A stretch of 64,000 nt of DNA, from positions 62,001-126,000 of IMG/VR virus record IMGVR_UViG_3300008110_000030. The stretch is one strand, 5' to 3'. Positions within the stretch are counted from its first letter, which is position 1; each line of letters opens with the position of its first letter. Positions 68 to 64,000 of this stretch are shown here, piece after piece. The notes beneath the pieces are model-generated. The model saw only the letters and a list, made by a program, of their open reading frames with translations. It ran no database searches and was not told the origin of the DNA. The translations under genes were made by a program, and so were the position numbers.

Positions 68-532
68 ATGCCTAAGTGTTATCAATTAATTGGTGTTCCA
101 GCTTCAGGAAAAAGTACCTGGGTTAAAAATCAAGATTGGGCAGTTGACTGTGTAGTAGTTTCTACAGATGAATTTGTTGAAGATTATGCCAAAGAGTGTG
201 GCTTAACTTATAGTGAAGTATTTGACGACTACATGCCAACTGCTGTTGATTTGATGGCTGAGAAAGTTATTCGTGCTCGAGAAGCAGGCAAAGATATTAT
301 TTGGGACCAAACTAGTACATCGTGGACCAGTCGTCGACGTAAATTTAATATGTTGCCTGACTATGAACATATTGCTGTAGTGTTTCAAACTCCTGATGAA
401 GAAGAACATCTACGTCGGTTAAAAACACGTCCAGGAAAAGTTATTCCAGAAGCAGTATTGTTTGACATGGTTTGGAATTTTGAAATGCCTACTGAGGAAG
501 AAGGCTTTAAAGAAATTTGGAGAGTATCATGA
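68..532 (+). CDS. P-loop kinase, AAA_33/polynucleotide-kinase-like
   Basis: Walker A GVPASGKST, then VSTD, IIWDQTS and an RxxR-like lid (RLKTR); 154-aa single domain. Confidence 0.75.
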   Translation: MPKCYQLIGVPASGKSTWVKNQDWAVDCVVVSTDEFVEDYAKECGLTYSEVFDDYMPTAVDLMAEKVIRAREAGKDIIWDQTSTSWTSRRRKFNMLPDYEHIAVVFQTPDEEEHLRRLKTRPGKVIPEAVLFDMVWNFEMPTEEEGFKEIWRVS

Positions 533-969
533 AAGAAGAATTTGATAAAAATCTAGTAGAAAAATATCCTAAGATATTTGCTAATCGTAATGGTGATCCT
601 AAAGAAACATTAATGTGTTGGGGTTTTGAATGTGGTGATGGTTGGTATCCTATCATTAATACTCTTTGTAGTGAAATACAATCTCGAATTGATTGGAATA
701 ATAAAAACGTAGATAACGGATATGGAAACTACAAAGAGATCAAACAGGTAGTAGCTGTACAGATTAAAGAAAAGTTTGGTGGACTTCGTTTTTATTACGA
801 AGGCGGTGATGATCATATTCACGGCATGGTCCGTATGGCAGAAAATTGGGCAAGCACTACCTGTGAAATATGTGGGAATCCTGGACAAACAAGACATGGG
901 TTTTGGATTAAAACATTGTGTGACGAACATGAAGCAGAACGACAAGAGAGATATAAGGACAGGTCATAA
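529..969 (+). CDS. conserved phage hypothetical protein (QIKEKFGGLRFY motif, C-terminal CxxC..C)
   Basis: ATG at 529 overlaps the upstream TGA (ATGA); motifs ECGDGW, KEKFGGLRFY, CEICG. Confidence 0.7.
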   Translation: MKEEFDKNLVEKYPKIFANRNGDPKETLMCWGFECGDGWYPIINTLCSEIQSRIDWNNKNVDNGYGNYKEIKQVVAVQIKEKFGGLRFYYEGGDDHIHGMVRMAENWASTTCEICGNPGQTRHGFWIKTLCDEHEAERQERYKDRS

Positions 970-14637: not shown

Positions 14638-14666
14638 TTGACTTAAAGAGATATTGGTGCTACAAT
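14638..14666 (+). promoter_or_regulatory. sigma70-type promoter (extended -10) for the suf-like genes
   Basis: TTGACT (14638-14643), 17 bp, TACAAT (14661-14666) preceded by TGn; a TAAATA box also lies at 14610. Confidence 0.75.
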
Positions 14667-14709
14667 GTTTACTGTGGGCCAAAAACTACAAAAACAATAA
14701 GGTTCAATT

Positions 14710-15435
14710 ATGTTAAAAATTACAAATCTCTCCGTCAATTACGACGTTATTCCAATTTTGGAAGATATCAATTTAGAAATCAATGAAGGCGAAATTCACG
14801 CCATTTTAGGACCAACAGGTTCAGGCAAAAGTTCCTTAGTCAGTGTTATTGCTGGCAAATCAGATCTTAGCGTTGTCAAAGGTAAAATAAACTTTAAGAG
14901 AAAATCTTTAAACAGTTTAGATCCAAATGAAAGAAGTAAATTAGGAATTTTTACAACATTTCAGGAGCCACCTGAAATTAATGGCATTACAAATTTAAAT
15001 TTAACTAGACAAATTTTGAATGCTCGAAATGATAAAAGATCATCAACTGACGTTATTAATGATTATAAAAATTTAATAAAACAATTTGATCTAGGAAGCG
15101 AATGGTCTAATCGAGATTACAACGTAGGAGCAAGCGCAGGCGAAAAAAAGAAAAATGAAATTGTACAGTTATACATGCTCAATCCATCTCTTACAATTTT
15201 AGACGATATTGACAGTGGCTTAGACTTAGACACACTAACTGAAGTATTTAAAAGTTTAAAATCTTTCCTCTCACAAAAAGGAAAGGCAGCTATCATTATC
15301 ACACATCAACCAACGATCCTTGAAGCAATAGAGCCCACACATGTGCATGTTATCATAGATGGAAGAATCGTGGAGTCAGGTGATAAGAAAATAATTAAAA
15401 GGATCATTTCAAATGGCTATCGAGAGTTTTCTTAA
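14710..15435 (+). CDS. sufC: SufC-like ABC ATPase with degenerate signature and Walker B
   Basis: EIHAILGPTGSGKSS, FQEPPEI, SAGEKKKNEIVQ, ILDDIDSGLD, IITH, VHVIIDGRIVESG. Confidence 0.85.
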   Translation: MLKITNLSVNYDVIPILEDINLEINEGEIHAILGPTGSGKSSLVSVIAGKSDLSVVKGKINFKRKSLNSLDPNERSKLGIFTTFQEPPEINGITNLNLTRQILNARNDKRSSTDVINDYKNLIKQFDLGSEWSNRDYNVGASAGEKKKNEIVQLYMLNPSLTILDDIDSGLDLDTLTEVFKSLKSFLSQKGKAAIIITHQPTILEAIEPTHVHVIIDGRIVESGDKKIIKRIISNGYREFS

Positions 15436-16237
15436 AGTTGATTCACAAGACCCAGATTGGTCAAACAGTCCTACACAGTACTTTGGTAAAAAATTTAAGG
15501 TCATTGATGCAAATTGCTTAATGATAAAAGAAAATACTGATGACTTGATGGTTCTACGTATGAATCCAACTGAATCAGATTTGTTATGCAAAAATTTACA
15601 AGTGCTTGGAAGAGACAGTAGTAGGCTAGACTTATTCATTCTATGCGATGGATCTAAAAATACTCAACAGGTTTTTATTTACAATGTAACTGCTGAACCA
15701 AATTCAATTATTAATATTGGGATTTTTGTTAAAGACGGGAAACTTAATAAGCATATATTTGAATGTGAGCTATACGAAAACTCTGTTATTAATATCTTTG
15801 GTCTAGCAGAAAATGGGGTTGGCGGTAGCAGTGAGATTATAAGCAAAGTTTATCACGCTGGTCCTTGTGCAGAGAGCAACACGTTTGTAAACAGTATTGC
15901 TGGAAAAAATAGTCGAACTGTCTTTCAGGGTATTGTTAAAATTGAAGAAGACATGATAGACAGCGTGTCCAGTGTAACTAATACCAGTATTGTCTGTGAC
16001 GAAACTTCACAAGCATTTAGTACTCCACAAATGGTTATTGACTGTGGACAAGTACGGGCGTATCATAGTTGTGAAGTTACTACAATTGACGAACATAGTC
16101 TATGGTATTTAGAAAGCAAGGGCATTGATAAAGTCAGTGCTGAGAACTTGTTAAAAACCCTGCATCAAGATAGTGTGTTGGAACTTATTGAATATCAAGA
16201 CATTAAAGATGAACTCAAAGATTTTTTCCAAAGTTAA
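15413..16237 (+). CDS. sufD: SufD/SufB-family beta-helix protein, most like SufD
   Basis: SRTVFQGIVKI, STPQMVID..V.AYHS, LWYLESKGI; lies between sufC and sufS. Confidence 0.75.
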   Translation: MAIESFLKVDSQDPDWSNSPTQYFGKKFKVIDANCLMIKENTDDLMVLRMNPTESDLLCKNLQVLGRDSSRLDLFILCDGSKNTQQVFIYNVTAEPNSIINIGIFVKDGKLNKHIFECELYENSVINIFGLAENGVGGSSEIISKVYHAGPCAESNTFVNSIAGKNSRTVFQGIVKIEEDMIDSVSSVTNTSIVCDETSQAFSTPQMVIDCGQVRAYHSCEVTTIDEHSLWYLESKGIDKVSAENLLKTLHQDSVLELIEYQDIKDELKDFFQS

Positions 16238-57224: not shown

Positions 57225-57504
57225 AATTACTACTGATAATATTGTTAATGACAGTCCTGATGATTGTTATTTAGATCCTACTGACCCTTTGAATGAGATA
57301 AAGGCTCTACAATATCTTGGTGGTATCAATTCGTTAAATAGACTACAAGAGTACAAAGGTATGCAAGGTAGTAATATTAGTGCAACTGGCTCAGAGAAGG
57401 GAAGGCTACAGCGAGAAAACAATATTAAACCAGGAACTCCTGAATGGTTTAAATTGTGGTTTAGTTTACCGTATATGACTGGCGAGAGGCCTATTGAAAA
57501 ATGA
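57211..57504 (+). CDS. hypothetical protein
   Basis: IKPGTPEWFKLWF motif; ATGA overlap with the next gene. Confidence 0.65.
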   Translation: MKQYRITTDNIVNDSPDDCYLDPTDPLNEIKALQYLGGINSLNRLQEYKGMQGSNISATGSEKGRLQRENNIKPGTPEWFKLWFSLPYMTGERPIEK

Positions 57505-58655
57505 AAATAAGAGATTTATTAGAGTTATCAAAATCTAGTCCACTAGGCAAATTCATTGATAAAGTAGATACAGATTATTCTGTAGGGGCAACCACAGATA
57601 AGATTGGCAATGCAATTTCTAACGTTTTTAAAAATTATTCTAATGATAAAACAGATGCACCTACTAAAAGTGAAGTTCCTGTAACAGTAGCAAAACCTGC
57701 ATCAAGTTCAACTGCTGTAAGTTCTGAAGTTGTTGCTCAAGAATTAGATAGACAAGGAATCACTGACCCAAATTTAAGAAAATCAATTATGGGGAAATTT
57801 GGTCAAGAATCAGGCGGAAACACTAGAGTCACTGAAATTCCTTATAAGAATACAAGTAATGATATTATTAGATTAAGATTACCGCAACTTAGAAGTATGA
57901 GTGATAATGAATTAAATGATTTAAAACAAGATACAGAAAAATTTTTTAATAGGGCGTATGGATATAAAGGTAATTCGTTAAACAATACCGAACCAGGTGA
58001 TGGTTACAAATACAGGGGCCGTGGTCTAACTGGTATCACTGGTAAAGTAAATTACCAAAGAGCTGATGATGCATTAGGTTTAAAAGGCGAGCTAGTTAAA
58101 AATCCTGATCTACTATTAGATCCAGAAATTGATAAAAGAGCTTCTGTTTGGTTTTATAAGGCAGCTGGCGCGGATAAAGTAACTTTTGCCAATCAAGAAG
58201 ATGCTAATAAGTGGGCTATACACAAGGCTGGTGGGAACATGTATGCTCCTGGCACTGAGTTAGGAAATATCGCATTAAATGATTTGAATAAAAGAACGGC
58301 CGTAATTGGTGCGGTAGCTGCCACTGGGATTGTGGCAGGTCCAACTTTAGTAAGAAAAGCAGACACTGTAATAGATAGGGTTAAAAATCTCTTAGGCAAA
58401 ACAGCCGACAGTGCTAAATCAGTTGTAGGACAAACAGTAAACACTGCCAGAAATACTGCTATAGCAACTGCATTGGGTTCAGGATCTAGCAGTGGAAGTG
58501 GTGGAGGCTTTTATGGCGGAAGTGGATCAGCTCCAGAAGAACAAGAAGTGACATTAATAATTAATGGCAAACGTAAAAAATTTAAAAATAAAAGAGAAGC
58601 AAAAATTGCAATGGACATTGCAAGATCACAAGGGATAGATGCAAGATATGGGTAA
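57501..58655 (+). CDS. second GH19/lysozyme-like protein with MKIRDLLE leader (probable virion-associated muramidase)
   Basis: GQESGG, GDGYKYRGRGLTGITGKVNY, NPDLL. Confidence 0.75.
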   Translation: MKIRDLLELSKSSPLGKFIDKVDTDYSVGATTDKIGNAISNVFKNYSNDKTDAPTKSEVPVTVAKPASSSTAVSSEVVAQELDRQGITDPNLRKSIMGKFGQESGGNTRVTEIPYKNTSNDIIRLRLPQLRSMSDNELNDLKQDTEKFFNRAYGYKGNSLNNTEPGDGYKYRGRGLTGITGKVNYQRADDALGLKGELVKNPDLLLDPEIDKRASVWFYKAAGADKVTFANQEDANKWAIHKAGGNMYAPGTELGNIALNDLNKRTAVIGAVAATGIVAGPTLVRKADTVIDRVKNLLGKTADSAKSVVGQTVNTARNTAIATALGSGSSSGSGGGFYGGSGSAPEEQEVTLIINGKRKKFKNKREAKIAMDIARSQGIDARYG

Positions 58656-59256
58656 GCCAGAAGTTTATTTAGATATGGACGGAGTTATTGCAGACTTTTT
58701 TACAGAGTATGCTAAACTTGCGGGCATTGAATCAGGGAACTACAGAGATATTCCACCAGCAAAAACAGATCCTACATTAAACAAAATGATAGGTACAGAC
58801 TTCTTTGCACGTCTACCAAAATGCAGAAATGCAGATGCACTAGTAGACTTAATAGTAAAAACATTTGGTACTTATAATATTTGTTCAAGTCCTCTGCGTG
58901 GTGATCATGCAAACAGTGAAAAACAAAAAAAGATTTGGCTTGGCAACAATCTAAAATACCAACCTAAAGATGTTGTAATTACACCAAACAAAGCCAAATG
59001 GGCCAAACAAACAGATGGAACTCCTAACATTTTAATTGATGATAGAGGAAGTAACATTAGTTCATGGGAAGCCGCTGGTGGTATTGGTATCAAATATCAA
59101 GCAGACGAAGACAACTTACAAGTAATTGTACAAGGTATTAAAAGAGCATTTTCTGTTATAAAAGGTGAAGAGAAACACGACCCTCAAAAGTTAAAAAGTT
59201 TAGATCGTAGTAATGGTAATTTAATTGCTACTAGTGGTGATAAAGACGCCCATTAA
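58639..59256 (+). CDS. HAD-superfamily 5'(3')-deoxyribonucleotidase-like phosphatase
   Basis: YLDMDGVIADF, CSSP, K..W, ILIDD, W.AAGG.GI. Confidence 0.85.
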   Translation: MQDMGKPEVYLDMDGVIADFFTEYAKLAGIESGNYRDIPPAKTDPTLNKMIGTDFFARLPKCRNADALVDLIVKTFGTYNICSSPLRGDHANSEKQKKIWLGNNLKYQPKDVVITPNKAKWAKQTDGTPNILIDDRGSNISSWEAAGGIGIKYQADEDNLQVIVQGIKRAFSVIKGEEKHDPQKLKSLDRSNGNLIATSGDKDAH

Positions 59257-59522: not shown

Positions 59523-60866
59523 ATGCCTTTTAAATCAGCTAAACAGAAAAAAACAATAGATGCGGCAGCACATAATCCTGCTTTTGCAAAAAAAGTAGGA
59601 ATTAAGACCGGTGATGCCAAAAAAATGTCTGCACATGGTAAGGGTCAAACTAAGTTTGAAGAAGCCAAAGATACTGTAGAAAAAGATGAAAAAGGCAACG
59701 TTAAATCATGGAAGCACGAAGGCGACTGGAAAAAAGCTGATAACAAACAAGGACGTGGAAAAGTGACTAATTTAAGCGACAAGGCTCGTAGACAAACAGC
59801 AAAGATGAGCAAGGCTGAAACTGAAATGGCTGAAGCATTTGAACAAGCATTAGAAGGTGCTGGATCTCCAACAGTTACGCATGGTCCAAACAAAGGCAAA
59901 AAATGGAGTCCAGAAACTCCAGGGCCAACAAACCCAAGTTATAAAAGTATAGACAAAGGCATCCCTAGTCCACCAGATGGTGCAACTGCTCCTCCTCCTG
60001 GTTACAAGCCTCCAAAGCCTAGCAAACGTGCAGAAGTTACACCTACAAGTGACAGTGACGACACAGCCATGACCGCAGAAAGTTCTTCTAAGAAAGTAAT
60101 GAAGAAGTTACGTGCTAAACACATGATGGAGTCAATTAAAGTGTTAGGAGAATTAATTGCAGAAGCTAAAAAATCTGCAAAAAAGAAAAGTACTAAAGTA
60201 AAAGAAGATCCTAACGAAGGTAATGCATTTGGTAAAGCAGTGCAAGATGCTAAAAAAGACGGCATACAAAAAGGTGAAAAAGTCAAAGTTGGTGGTAAAG
60301 AATATCCAGTAAAAGAAGCTGCCAATGAAAAATGCAATCATACACCAAAAGGTAAAAAGTGCCCAGTACACGGTTTGAAAGAGTGTGGTTCAATGTATGA
60401 AGGCAATGACGGTAACTTGGCCAATAATGCCAAACCATATGACAAAGTCACACGTGGTGATGTTATTGCTGGTCGTTTGGGCAAAGACGAAATGGGCGGT
60501 AAGAAAAAGAAAGATAAAAAGACTACTGAAACATTTATGCCTGTAAACAAGGAAAAGCCACAAGGACCAGTTGATAAGGCAATTGGTAATGTGACCAAGG
60601 CAGTTGGTGGTGCAATTAAAACTGTTGCAGACAAAGTAAAAGGTGCAACTGGAGACACTGACGTAAAAACAGACGAGTCATATACTGTCAATGGTAAGAA
60701 AGTGTCCAAAGCTGCCTATGATAAAGAAATGAAAAAAGCTGGCAAAGGTAAAGAAAAAGTTAAAGAAGGTTGGACACACGATACACTAGCCGCAAGATTA
60801 TTTGAAAGTGGTGACGAGTATATGGTTTCATTACATAACAGATTAAGCCAAAAAATAAAAGGTTAA
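59523..60866 (+). CDS. highly charged modular protein (probable internal head/core protein)
   Basis: TAAATA at 59500, GGAG RBS, ATG at 59523; many hydrophobic-x-E-(G/A/S) motifs. Confidence 0.65.
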   Translation: MPFKSAKQKKTIDAAAHNPAFAKKVGIKTGDAKKMSAHGKGQTKFEEAKDTVEKDEKGNVKSWKHEGDWKKADNKQGRGKVTNLSDKARRQTAKMSKAETEMAEAFEQALEGAGSPTVTHGPNKGKKWSPETPGPTNPSYKSIDKGIPSPPDGATAPPPGYKPPKPSKRAEVTPTSDSDDTAMTAESSSKKVMKKLRAKHMMESIKVLGELIAEAKKSAKKKSTKVKEDPNEGNAFGKAVQDAKKDGIQKGEKVKVGGKEYPVKEAANEKCNHTPKGKKCPVHGLKECGSMYEGNDGNLANNAKPYDKVTRGDVIAGRLGKDEMGGKKKKDKKTTETFMPVNKEKPQGPVDKAIGNVTKAVGGAIKTVADKVKGATGDTDVKTDESYTVNGKKVSKAAYDKEMKKAGKGKEKVKEGWTHDTLAARLFESGDEYMVSLHNRLSQKIKG

Positions 60867-60878
60867 TCCACTAATACT

Positions 60879-60904
60879 AACAGGGCACAAGTTGCCCTGT
60901 TCTT
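60879..60904 (+). terminator. probable terminator ending the array
   Basis: AACAGGGCA-CAAGT-TGCCCTGTT followed by CTT. Confidence 0.7.
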
Positions 60905-60915
60905 ACGACTGACTC

Positions 60916-60943
60916 TTGACTTCTTTATAAATGATAGTATAAT
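60916..60943 (+). promoter_or_regulatory. sigma70-type promoter
   Basis: TTGACT (60916-60921), 16 bp, TATAAT (60938-60943). Confidence 0.7.
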
Positions 60944-60965
60944 TGTATATTATTTAGGAGATAAC

Positions 60966-61301
60966 ATGTCTAAAGTATTTGGTGCGCCAGAACAGGCTAA
61001 ACTAAAACAACTAGTAAAAGATGGTTGGCAAGTAATGGATGAAATTAAAAGTCTACAGGAAGGATTGAACGACACAATCAAAGCCGTAGCTGAAGAACTT
61101 GATGTTAAACCAAGTGTAATTAAAAAAGCTATACGTACAGCAATGAAAGACGATTGGGAACAAACTGCTAAAGACTTCAGTGATTTAGAAGACATTGTTC
61201 ATACAACAGGTCATGCTGGTCCATGGAATCAAAACACAACAACAACACCTAAACCACAAGCGCAAGTAATAGATGATACAGACGATTCTGCACCATTCTA
61301 A
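60966..61301 (+). CDS. small DNA-binding protein (T4 DsbA/GapR-like)
   Basis: AGGAG RBS; LNDTIKAVAEELDVKPSVIKKAIR helical pattern. Confidence 0.55.
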   Translation: MSKVFGAPEQAKLKQLVKDGWQVMDEIKSLQEGLNDTIKAVAEELDVKPSVIKKAIRTAMKDDWEQTAKDFSDLEDIVHTTGHAGPWNQNTTTTPKPQAQVIDDTDDSAPF

Positions 61302-61575
61302 AAACGCCAAAGAGTGGATTAAGGCCGATTGGGATGCCAATCCTTGGCGATTAACAGCAGAAACATATAACGCATTCACAGCGTTAGCTACTGCTATCAT
61401 TTTTGCCTTTTTGGCTCCTGATGTGCCTTACGGTATAACATATCCATTATGGTTAAGCGGAACATTTTTAATGATATTCTGCGGTATAAGCCGAGGAAGT
61501 TTTGGCATGGTAGTAATGAGTGTTGTTATGACAATCATAGACACATTTGGTTACATTCGTTTTTTACTACAATAA
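61273..61575 (+). CDS. membrane protein (about 3 TM)
   Basis: Three hydrophobic segments. Confidence 0.6.
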   Translation: MIQTILHHSKNAKEWIKADWDANPWRLTAETYNAFTALATAIIFAFLAPDVPYGITYPLWLSGTFLMIFCGISRGSFGMVVMSVVMTIIDTFGYIRFLLQ

Positions 61576-61587
61576 ATATATGTAAGA

Positions 61588-61638
61588 TGGTTGATCCAGC
61601 CACAATTGGATATATTGGTTTGCAAGCCGTAAGTTGCA
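61588..61638 (+). promoter_or_regulatory. tandem RNA hairpins abutting the polymerase RBS (candidate translational operator)
   Basis: TGGTT-G-ATCCA-GCCACAAT-TGGAT and TGGTT-TGCAA-GCCGTAAG-TTGCA, immediately followed by GAGGAG. Confidence 0.55.
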
Positions 61639-61650
61639 GAGGAGAAAAAT

Positions 61651-64000
61651 ATGAGTTATGTAGATGCCTTCTGGGATAGAGAGAAGGATGTGATTCACGT
61701 AGTTGAACGTGATAACAAAGGTCAAAGACGTTTCGTTGACTATCCAGCGAAATACACATTTTACTACCCTGATAATAAAGGGAAGTTCCACAGCATATTT
61801 GGTGAATCATTATCCAAAGTCACTGCTAGAAATTTTAAAGAATTTGCAAAAGAACAAAAGATACACAGCAATCATACACTGTATGAAAGCGATATTAATC
61901 CAGTATTTCGTGTTTTAGAAGAACAATATCTAGGACAAGAACCTCCAAAATTACACGTAGCATTTTTTGACATTGAGGTGGACTTTGATCCAGAACGTGG
62001 CTACGCATCGCCAGATGATGCGTTTATGCCAATTACTGCGATTGCTGTTCACCTACAATGGTTAGATACTTTAGTATGTTTAGCTATTCCGCCAAAAACA
62101 TTAACAATGGAACAGGCAAAAGAGCAAATTAAAGAATTTCCAAATACAATACTGTTTGAAACTGAAGCAGAATTATTGGATACCTTTTTAACTTTAATTG
62201 AAGATGCTGATGTTATTACAGGCTGGAACAGTGAAGGCTTTGATATTCCTTATACTGTTAACCGTGTTACTAAAGTTCTAAGCAAAGAGGACACTAAGAG
62301 ATTCTGTCTATTTGATCAGTATCCTAAAAAACGTGAATATGAAAAGTTTGGTAGAACTTCAACTACATATGACTTTGTTGGGCGGGTGCATTTAGATAGT
62401 TTAGAAGTTTATAGAAAATACAAATATGAAGAAATGCACAGTTACAGATTGGATGTAATTGGTGAGCTAGAATTGGGTGAGAAGAAAACTCAATACGAAG
62501 GAACATTAGATCAACTGTATAATCAAGACTTTAAAACATTCATTGAATACAACAGACAAGATACGTCACTGTTAGATAAGATGGATAAGAAATTAAAGTT
62601 TTTAGATCTGGCCAATGTACTAGCACATGGTAATACTGTATTGTTGCAAACAACAATGGGTGCTGTAGCCATGACCGAACAAGCTATTATTAATGAAGCA
62701 CACCAACAAGGATTGATTGTTCCAAGTAGAGCAAGAAAATCTGAACAAGGCGACACTGCGGCAGCAGGTGCGTATGTTGCATATCCTAAAAAAGGATTGC
62801 ATGGTTGGATTGGTGCTATTGACATTAACTCACTGTACCCTAGTGCAATTCGAGCATTAAACATGGCTCCAGAAACTATTGTTGGACAATTACGTCAAAC
62901 AAAAACACAAGAGTTTATTGAAACACAAATGGCTTTACACAAAAAGTCATTTGCTGGCAGCTGGGAAGATAAATTTGGTAGCTTAGAATACGAGTCAGTT
63001 ATCAATCAAGACAAAGCAGAAGAAATTACAATTGATTGGGAAAACGGTGAAGTATCAGTACATAGTGGTGCTGAAATTTATGATATGATTTTCAACAGTC
63101 ACAAACCGTGGATCTTAAGTGCTAATGGTACAATATTCACTTATGAAAAAGAAGGCATTATTCCAGGTCTGTTAAAAAAGTGGTATGCTGAACGTAAGGA
63201 AATGCAAAAGAAATCTAAGGAAGCAGAATCTGCTGGCAACAAAATTGAAGCTGAATATTGGGACAAGCGACAATTAGTGCGTAAAATTAATCTTAACAGT
63301 TTGTATGGTGCGTTGTTAAATCCTGGTTGCAGATTCTTTGATAAGCGAATTGGACAATCAACTACACTGGTTGGCAGATGTGTTGCTAGACATATGGCAG
63401 GAAAGATCAATGAAATCATTTGCGGCACATATGATTACAAAGGTAAAAGTATTATATATGGCGACACTGACTCTTGTTATTTCTCCGCATATTCAACATT
63501 AAAAACTGACATTGATAAAGGTAACATAGCATGGAATAAAGACACTGTGGTTACTTTGTATGATCAAATTGCAGACGAAGTAAATGACAGTTTTCCACAA
63601 TTCATGCTTGACTACTTCCATGTTCCTAAGTCACGTGGAGAAGTGATTAAGGGTGGTAGAGAATTAGTTGCTATCAGCGGATTGTTTATTACCAAAAAGC
63701 GTTATGGTGTTTTAATTTATGACAAAGAAGGCAAACGTTTAGATGTAAACGACAAGCCAGGAAAAATTAAAGCAATGGGCTTGGATCTTAAACGTTCTGA
63801 TACACCTGAATATATGCAGACCTTTTTAGAAGAAATTCTAACAAACGTGCTAGAAGGAAAACAAGAAAAAGAAATTCTTGACAAGATCATTGAATTTAGA
63901 AACGAATGGAAAACCCGTCCTGGCTGGGAAAAAGGAAGTCCAAGACGAGCTAACAATATTTCTCAATATCAAGAAGAAGAACGTAAAAAAGGTAAAGCTA
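61651..64000 (+). CDS. family-B DNA polymerase (T4 gp43-like), truncated by the window end; missing from ORF track
   Basis: GAGGAG RBS, ATG at 61651; in-frame ExoI FFDIE, ExoII GWNSEGFDIPY, ExoIII YNRQD, motif A DINSLYP, motif B KINLNSLYG, motif C YGDTDS, KKRY. Confidence 0.96.
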   Translation, partial: MSYVDAFWDREKDVIHVVERDNKGQRRFVDYPAKYTFYYPDNKGKFHSIFGESLSKVTARNFKEFAKEQKIHSNHTLYESDINPVFRVLEEQYLGQEPPKLHVAFFDIEVDFDPERGYASPDDAFMPITAIAVHLQWLDTLVCLAIPPKTLTMEQAKEQIKEFPNTILFETEAELLDTFLTLIEDADVITGWNSEGFDIPYTVNRVTKVLSKEDTKRFCLFDQYPKKREYEKFGRTSTTYDFVGRVHLDSLEVYRKYKYEEMHSYRLDVIGELELGEKKTQYEGTLDQLYNQDFKTFIEYNRQDTSLLDKMDKKLKFLDLANVLAHGNTVLLQTTMGAVAMTEQAIINEAHQQGLIVPSRARKSEQGDTAAAGAYVAYPKKGLHGWIGAIDINSLYPSAIRALNMAPETIVGQLRQTKTQEFIETQMALHKKSFAGSWEDKFGSLEYESVINQDKAEEITIDWENGEVSVHSGAEIYDMIFNSHKPWILSANGTIFTYEKEGIIPGLLKKWYAERKEMQKKSKEAESAGNKIEAEYWDKRQLVRKINLNSLYGALLNPGCRFFDKRIGQSTTLVGRCVARHMAGKINEIICGTYDYKGKSIIYGDTDSCYFSAYSTLKTDIDKGNIAWNKDTVVTLYDQIADEVNDSFPQFMLDYFHVPKSRGEVIKGGRELVAISGLFITKKRYGVLIYDKEGKRLDVNDKPGKIKAMGLDLKRSDTPEYMQTFLEEILTNVLEGKQEKEILDKIIEFRNEWKTRPGWEKGSPRRANNISQYQEEERKKGKA

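Follow-up and report, generated by a model that had tools for sequence, protein, structure and literature searches.

Autogenous translational control of a replicative DNA polymerase has so far been documented only in T4-type phages, where gp43 of T4, RB69 and RB49 represses its own translation through a hairpin with a 5-bp stem and an 8-nt loop, plus sequence overlapping the ribosome-binding site (RBS), with loop AA/AC bases important for binding (PMC3014915). In the T4 leader this hairpin reads AGCCU-AAUAACUC-GGGCU and is followed 7 nt later by AAGGA; it is single, and no evidence of a pseudoknot is reported for gene 43, although some T4-related polymerases are noted not to autoregulate (PMC3014915). 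Small H-type pseudoknots in leaders serve autogenous repression by other nucleic-acid-binding proteins, for example at T4 gene 32 and at Escherichia coli rpsO (S15), and the E. coli thrS operator presents two similar, tRNA-mimicking, anticodon-arm-like hairpins just upstream of the Shine-Dalgarno sequence (SD) to dimeric ThrRS. Small H-type pseudoknot riboswitches (preQ1-I) and tandem small-hairpin riboswitches next to an SD (guanidine-II/mini-ykkC) also exist. Here, we describe two tandem hairpins, each with a covariation-supported mini-pseudoknot, just ahead of the SD of a family-B DNA polymerase gene (polB) from an uncultured freshwater jumbo phage, an element that is conserved in hundreds of related uncultured phages and is most likely a translational operator, probably autogenous as in T4.

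The sequence analysed (the window) is a 64,000-nt stretch at positions 62,001 to 126,000 of the 214,617-bp IMG/VR record IMGVR_UViG_3300008110_000030, which is estimated to be 61% complete. The open reading frame (ORF) starting at window position 61651 matches DNA_pol_B (6.7e-34) and DNA_pol_B_exo1 (2.3e-21), shares 27% identity over 707 aa with T4 gp43 (E 8e-59), and has its nearest cultured relatives, at only 40-50% identity, among jumbo phages including Sinorhizobium phage Phosso, Agrobacterium Atu_ph07, Salicola SCTP-2 and RaK2/121Q-like phages. Its 75-nt intergenic leader and surroundings contain the following features:

60916-60943, + strand: sigma-70-like promoter (TTGACT, 16 nt, TATAAT; 11 of 12 consensus matches) upstream of two small ORFs and polB, function inferred from the consensus match only.
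61273-61575, + strand: upstream 100-aa ORF with a hydrophobic C-terminal half and no Pfam match, its stop codon 13 nt before unit 1.
61589-61591, + strand: unit 1, pseudoknot 5' strand GGU, pairing with loop bases G61599, C61600 and C61601.
61594-61611, + strand: unit 1 hairpin, after linker UG (61592-61593), with stem AUCCA (61594-61598), loop GCCACAAU (61599-61606) and stem UGGAU (61607-61611), followed by spacer AUAUU.
61617-61619, + strand: unit 2, pseudoknot 5' strand GGU, pairing with loop bases G61626, C61627 and C61628.
61621-61638, + strand: unit 2 hairpin, after linker U (61620), with stem UGCAA (61621-61625), loop GCCGUAAG (61626-61633) and stem UUGCA (61634-61638).
61639-61644, + strand: SD GAGGAG, directly abutting the 3' strand of unit 2 and followed by AAAAAU.
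61651-63999, + strand: family-B (T4 gp43-type) DNA polymerase gene, ATG at 61651, running off the window end (889 aa in identical relatives).

The motif thus lies 13-62 nt before the ATG. The first-pass annotation, made from the sequence alone, had described two copies of TGGTT, a 5-bp stem and a conserved 8-nt loop whose stems differ but pair fully, and this observation is confirmed, with one correction: copy 1 has one extra base (G) between TGGTT and its stem. The literal pattern therefore matches only copy 2 exactly, and the loose pattern, allowing up to 2 mismatches, was not enriched in the window (11 found, 8.4 expected) and was uninformative. Folding energy alone would not flag the motif either, with z-scores from −0.1 to −1.4 (−1.1 for the leader) and only −4.8 to −5.7 kcal/mol per hairpin. 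Upstream of the polymerase cluster (57501-59256) lie a glycoside hydrolase 19-like gene (lysozyme/chitinase class I; weak, 1.9e-5) and an NT5C-like 5'-deoxynucleotidase gene (weak, 7.5e-4).

Within this one sequence the case is weak, and the decisive evidence comes from relatives. Polymerase-based retrieval gave 28 IMG/VR loci and 80 metagenome loci with polymerases 69-100% identical to the window's (sequencing runs that hold the sequence are labelled river and lake water), and almost every leader has the same two hairpins. On 16 leaders, 92.9% of cells pair and 9 of 11 pairs show compensatory changes, compared with 24-42% pairing in slid controls, and RNAalifold independently predicts the same two hairpins. 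A covariance model of a single unit (R1) scored the window's two copies at 20.7 (unit 1) and 32.7 bits (unit 2), and found 149 hits in 570 kb, all on the polB strand; on their 125 distinct sequences, 96% of cells pair and all five stem pairs show compensatory changes (214 double-changed cells; slid controls, 18-57%). The 130 distinct units use 46 stem combinations, and in the 125 units with an 8-nt loop, G1, C2, A6 and A7 never change, C3 is U in two units and position 8 is never C, giving a loop consensus of GCC-N-N-A-A-N (GCCNNAAN in the window's units). A minority of units have 9-nt loops or a one-base bulge in stem 1, and these also covary.

These data bear on whether the element could instead act at the DNA level (as a repeated protein-binding site, origin or promoter element) or as a transcription terminator or attenuator. 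There are two direct repeats of GGT-N7-GCC-N2-AA, and an A/T-rich TAAATA-like box lies about 10 nt upstream in many relatives. However, stems covary while their sequence is free, G-U pairs occur in the stems and would be A-C mismatches on the other strand (so that the folded species is the + strand RNA), and the orientation relative to polB is always the same. As a dedicated promoter, the TAAATA(T) box was rejected: ATAAATAT is not enriched in the window (4 found, 7 expected), it overlaps upstream stop codons and it has no −35 partner. No promoter-like site lies directly before the hairpins, and the features of an intrinsic terminator were not found, with no + strand terminator call in 60800-61800 and unit 2 followed by GAGGAGAAAAAU rather than a U-tract. 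We consider this reading very unlikely. Instead, the near-consensus promoter 700 nt upstream is the likely source of a polycistronic transcript, and the motif is therefore probably intercistronic in this phage; this is an inference, as metatranscriptomes yielded only a few short, low-depth contigs that define no 5' end. The small ORF preceding the motif (61273-61575, and loci L110 to L118 in our collection of relatives) has a counterpart of about 90-100 aa in synteny from this phage to RaK2, 121Q, CBB, XaC1, PA5oct and Phosso; its function is unknown (it is annotated as a structural protein by MS in PA5oct), and in some uncultured clades it runs directly into the polB start with no leader.

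The first-pass annotation had also proposed that the 5' UGGU pairs with the loop to form a small pseudoknot, and repeated compensatory changes support this for 3 bp, whereas the fourth pair (U with loop position 4) is not kept in relatives. A GGY triplet precedes every stem, by 2 nt in unit 1 and by 1-3 nt in unit 2, and can pair with loop G1-C2-C3. Among 291 distinct units, all 286 with a GCC loop have GGY, all four with a GCU loop have AGU at the same offset, and no unit carries only one of the two changes. In 60 unit-1 sequences chosen without regard to the triplet, the three-pair helix is 97.8% paired (first pair G-C in 55 and A-U in 3; third pair U-G in 47 and C-G in 11), and a sister clade shows AGU with GCU in unit 2. 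On a FastTree phylogeny of 234 polymerases, the double change needs at least five events (four in unit 1 and one in unit 2), with each positive sequence surrounded by GGY/GCC neighbours; recombination of leaders could lower that count but, even so, the strict association is strong. Each unit of about 27 nt is therefore an H-type mini-pseudoknot, with a 3-bp helix 1, a 1-3-nt linker, a 4-6-bp helix 2, and 5-6 nt of remaining loop (N-N-A-A-N). We infer, from general pseudoknot geometry rather than from modelling, that these connecting lengths are sterically plausible and that the invariant adenines dock in the minor groove of the short helix.

The position of the element ties it to control of initiation at the first cistron of the polB translational unit. 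Across about 185 distinct tandem leaders, the two loops lie 27-30 nt apart (mode 29), the SD core begins −1 to +4 nt after unit 2 (mode +1, one outlier at +6), and the start codon lies 22-31 nt after the start of loop 2 (of 199 leaders, ATG in 155, TTG in 42 and GTG in 2; the TTG starts mark a large subclade including loci L145, L188, L239 and L240, consistent with selection for low polymerase translation). Unit 2 is the constant part, kept even where unit 1 is missing or replaced: in loci L020 and L268, unit 1 is replaced by an unrelated hairpin or a terminator-like hairpin, and in sister clades with polymerases 60-66% identical to the window's it is replaced by a different covarying hairpin flanked by conserved GAGUCG and CAUG, about 60-90 nt before polB (for example, in L412, L399, L432, L419, L383 and L362, with stems such as GCCC/GGGC, GCUC/GAGC and GUUGG/CCAAC), a second and unexplained leader module. 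In many of these sister leaders, the 3' strand of unit 2 is CGGAG or UGGAG (for example, stem UUCCG/CGGAG), so that the SD is base-paired inside the unit, whereas in the window's own clade the SD is adjacent to the structure and unpaired.

Where a small ORF has been inserted, the motif and SD head that ORF. In L076 (1202-1504; an unrelated 100-aa ORF), L079 (1352-1504) and L137 (minus strand, about 3008-2868), the latter two encoding a Cys-rich peptide of about 46-50 aa (C-x2-C-x5-C-x2-3-C), the ORF overlaps the polB start by ATGA, which suggests translational coupling under the same operator (L076 and L079 have no Pfam match); in L244 a 53-aa ORF follows the motif but was not traced through to polB. 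The control is nonetheless dispensable: polymerase relatives at 60-64% identity often have no leader at all, with polB directly abutting the upstream ORF, and in L088 a reverse-oriented 247-aa gene (204-947, minus strand; DUF723, 7e-9, plus a treble-clef zinc-finger hit), probably a mobile or homing-type insertion, has split the motif from polB, which there has its own SD.

The motif is specific to polB in the sequences searched. R1 found no other credible hit in the 64-kb window with filters off, the 214.6-kb genome record, a 245.6-kb relative, or five further records totalling 385 kb (about 0.85 Mb together). The next best window hit (14665-14692; 14.8 bits, E 0.27 in the window and 0.9 genome-wide) was judged chance; it precedes adjacent genes (14710-16237) for a SufC-like ABC ATPase (ABC_tran, 1.7e-18) and a SufB/D-core protein (SUFBD_core, 6.5e-27) that look like a virus-encoded Fe-S cluster assembly module, itself preceded by a near-consensus sigma-70-type promoter (TTGACT, 17 nt, TACAAT) at about 14639-14667. 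A hit in one of the five further records (G004, 2165-2192) was rejected because it is A/T-rich, has no GGY or AGU and no downstream ORF, and lies next to a tRNA-like sequence. All but 2 of the 149 hits in 570 kb, both weak, belong to the leader of polB or of an ORF inserted just before it. A first, loose collection-wide DNA pattern returned mostly chance matches (only 5 of 80 loci had both stems), but a second pattern, blind to polB, returned at least 120 stretches; of the 80 examined, 78 are followed by the polymerase N-terminus (MSYVD, LSYVD or MYVD), one by a small ORF (L244) and one is a chance match without a stem. The motif is absent from the leaders of the nine cultured jumbo-phage relatives examined (Phosso, Atu_ph07, SCTP-2, XaC1, CBB, RaK2, 121Q, Vibrio 2.275.O and PA5oct), which mostly carry terminator-like hairpins, and from some uncultured clades at 60-64% identity.

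Together, the structure, the pseudoknot, the position relative to the SD and the exclusive linkage to polB are established by these comparisons, whereas repression and the identity of any binding factor are our inferences. That the element is a genuine cis-regulatory RNA structure acting on polB initiation we consider highly likely. Our preferred reading, to which we assign a probability of about 0.5, is that the 50 nt before the polymerase SD form a translational operator on the sense mRNA, in which the remaining loop bases of each unit cross the short helix stacked on the stem, and stabilization of unit 2 at or over the SD would prevent 30S engagement and reduce polB translation. The stabilizing factor would most plausibly be the polymerase itself when not engaged on DNA, because polB is the only gene always linked to the motif, the protein is a gp43 homologue and gp43 proteins repress their own translation; unit 1 would probably add a second, cooperative binding site. 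The interpretation offered in the first-pass annotation (a tandem autogenous operator with a different loop sequence, or a new structured RNA motif) is thus partly supported: the motif is a genuine, conserved, covarying structured RNA abutting the SD, and the T4 precedent was described correctly, but that the polymerase binds or represses rests on analogy and linkage, as neither was assayed. Also against this reading, some T4-related polymerases do not autoregulate, the control is dispensable in some relatives, and in the window's own clade the SD is adjacent to the structure, not inside it. If the polymerase does bind, self-limitation of polymerase synthesis by RNA binding would be a recurrent solution among family-B polymerases, possibly reinvented more than once, and the natural compensatory variants (AGU with GCU, and many stem swaps) would provide a ready-made mutational series for dissecting how a DNA polymerase recognizes RNA; if not, the element is a new minimal regulatory RNA class. 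Either way, it yields a compact RNA of about 50 nt that is easily tested, and a covariance model for annotating polB starts in viromes.

Other effectors are possible but less likely. A different trans-acting protein, either phage-encoded (a RegA-like general repressor or another replication protein) or from the host, could read the conserved GGY, GCC and AA bases, and the tandem units would suit a dimer, whereas T4-type polymerases are monomers. We consider this unlikely, as the motif occurs only at polB in about 0.85 Mb of clade genomes, whereas a general regulator should have several targets, and the only gene invariably linked in cis is polB; a search of the 61%-complete genome for RegA (PF01818) also gave no match, although this is weak evidence because the control genomes gave none either. 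Similarly unlikely is an effector-free element that tunes translation constitutively, protects the mRNA from decay or senses temperature: the hairpins are marginally stable, as in RNA thermometers, the SD is inside the stem in sister clades and the TTG starts suggest selection for low polymerase output, but the invariant loop bases, conserved pseudoknot and tightly constrained spacing between units go well beyond what simple occlusion or a protective hairpin needs, and in the window's clade the SD itself is unpaired.

Least expected among these, a tandem minimal riboswitch, in which a small molecule such as a nucleotide stabilizes each pseudoknot, is compatible with the architecture, which resembles preQ1-I and guanidine-II/mini-ykkC in size, in its H-type fold or tandem hairpins with invariant loop bases, and in its place next to the SD. 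If each unit were a self-contained switch sensing something other than the polymerase, this would be the smallest natural tandem riboswitch-like element and the first known to gate a replicative DNA polymerase. However, almost all conserved bases are used in Watson-Crick pairs, leaving only A6 and A7 for a ligand pocket, a unit of about 27 nt is smaller than any known natural aptamer, a single gene rather than a pathway is regulated, unit 1 can be replaced by an unrelated hairpin, and the loops are not complementary to each other, so that no kissing interaction is possible; we regard this reading as improbable. Rfam 15 gave no hits in the whole window and, with permissive settings on 61540-61700, only preQ1-II at 14.6 bits (E 5.5), far below its gathering score of 47. 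A 2023 catalogue of 10,006 candidate structured RNAs from IMG/VR, 879 of them just upstream of genes, does not mention polymerase leaders in its main text (PMC10690425), although an anonymous prior listing in its supplementary tables, which we did not examine, cannot be excluded; a 2026 preprint on non-coding element mining does not mention the motif.

Compared with its closest described counterpart, the gene 43 operator of T4, RB69 and RB49, the element lies in the leader of a gp43-type family-B polymerase gene, has hairpins of about 5 bp with 8-nt loops immediately 5' of the RBS, is specific to that gene, and conserves adenines in the 3' half of the loop (UAAC in T4/RB69, UAAA in RB49 and here most often UAAA at loop positions 5-8). 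Only the AA, often within UAAA, is shared, and it sits at a different loop position; the loop otherwise has no sequence relation to AAUAACUC of T4, so that homology of the operators is not supported and the analogy could mislead. The element further differs in comprising two tandem units rather than one, in the pseudoknot of each unit, and in abutting the SD (mode +1 nt) rather than lying 7 nt away. With the T4 gene 32 and E. coli rpsO operators it shares a small H-type pseudoknot in a leader, but the genes and proteins differ, there is no tandem duplication in those operators and no sequence similarity, and the gene 32 pseudoknot lies far upstream and nucleates cooperative binding along unstructured RNA. 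With the thrS operator it shares two similar hairpins with conserved loops just upstream of the SD (in thrS, of the regulator's own gene), but the loops here have 8 nt rather than 7, and no mimicry target is evident.
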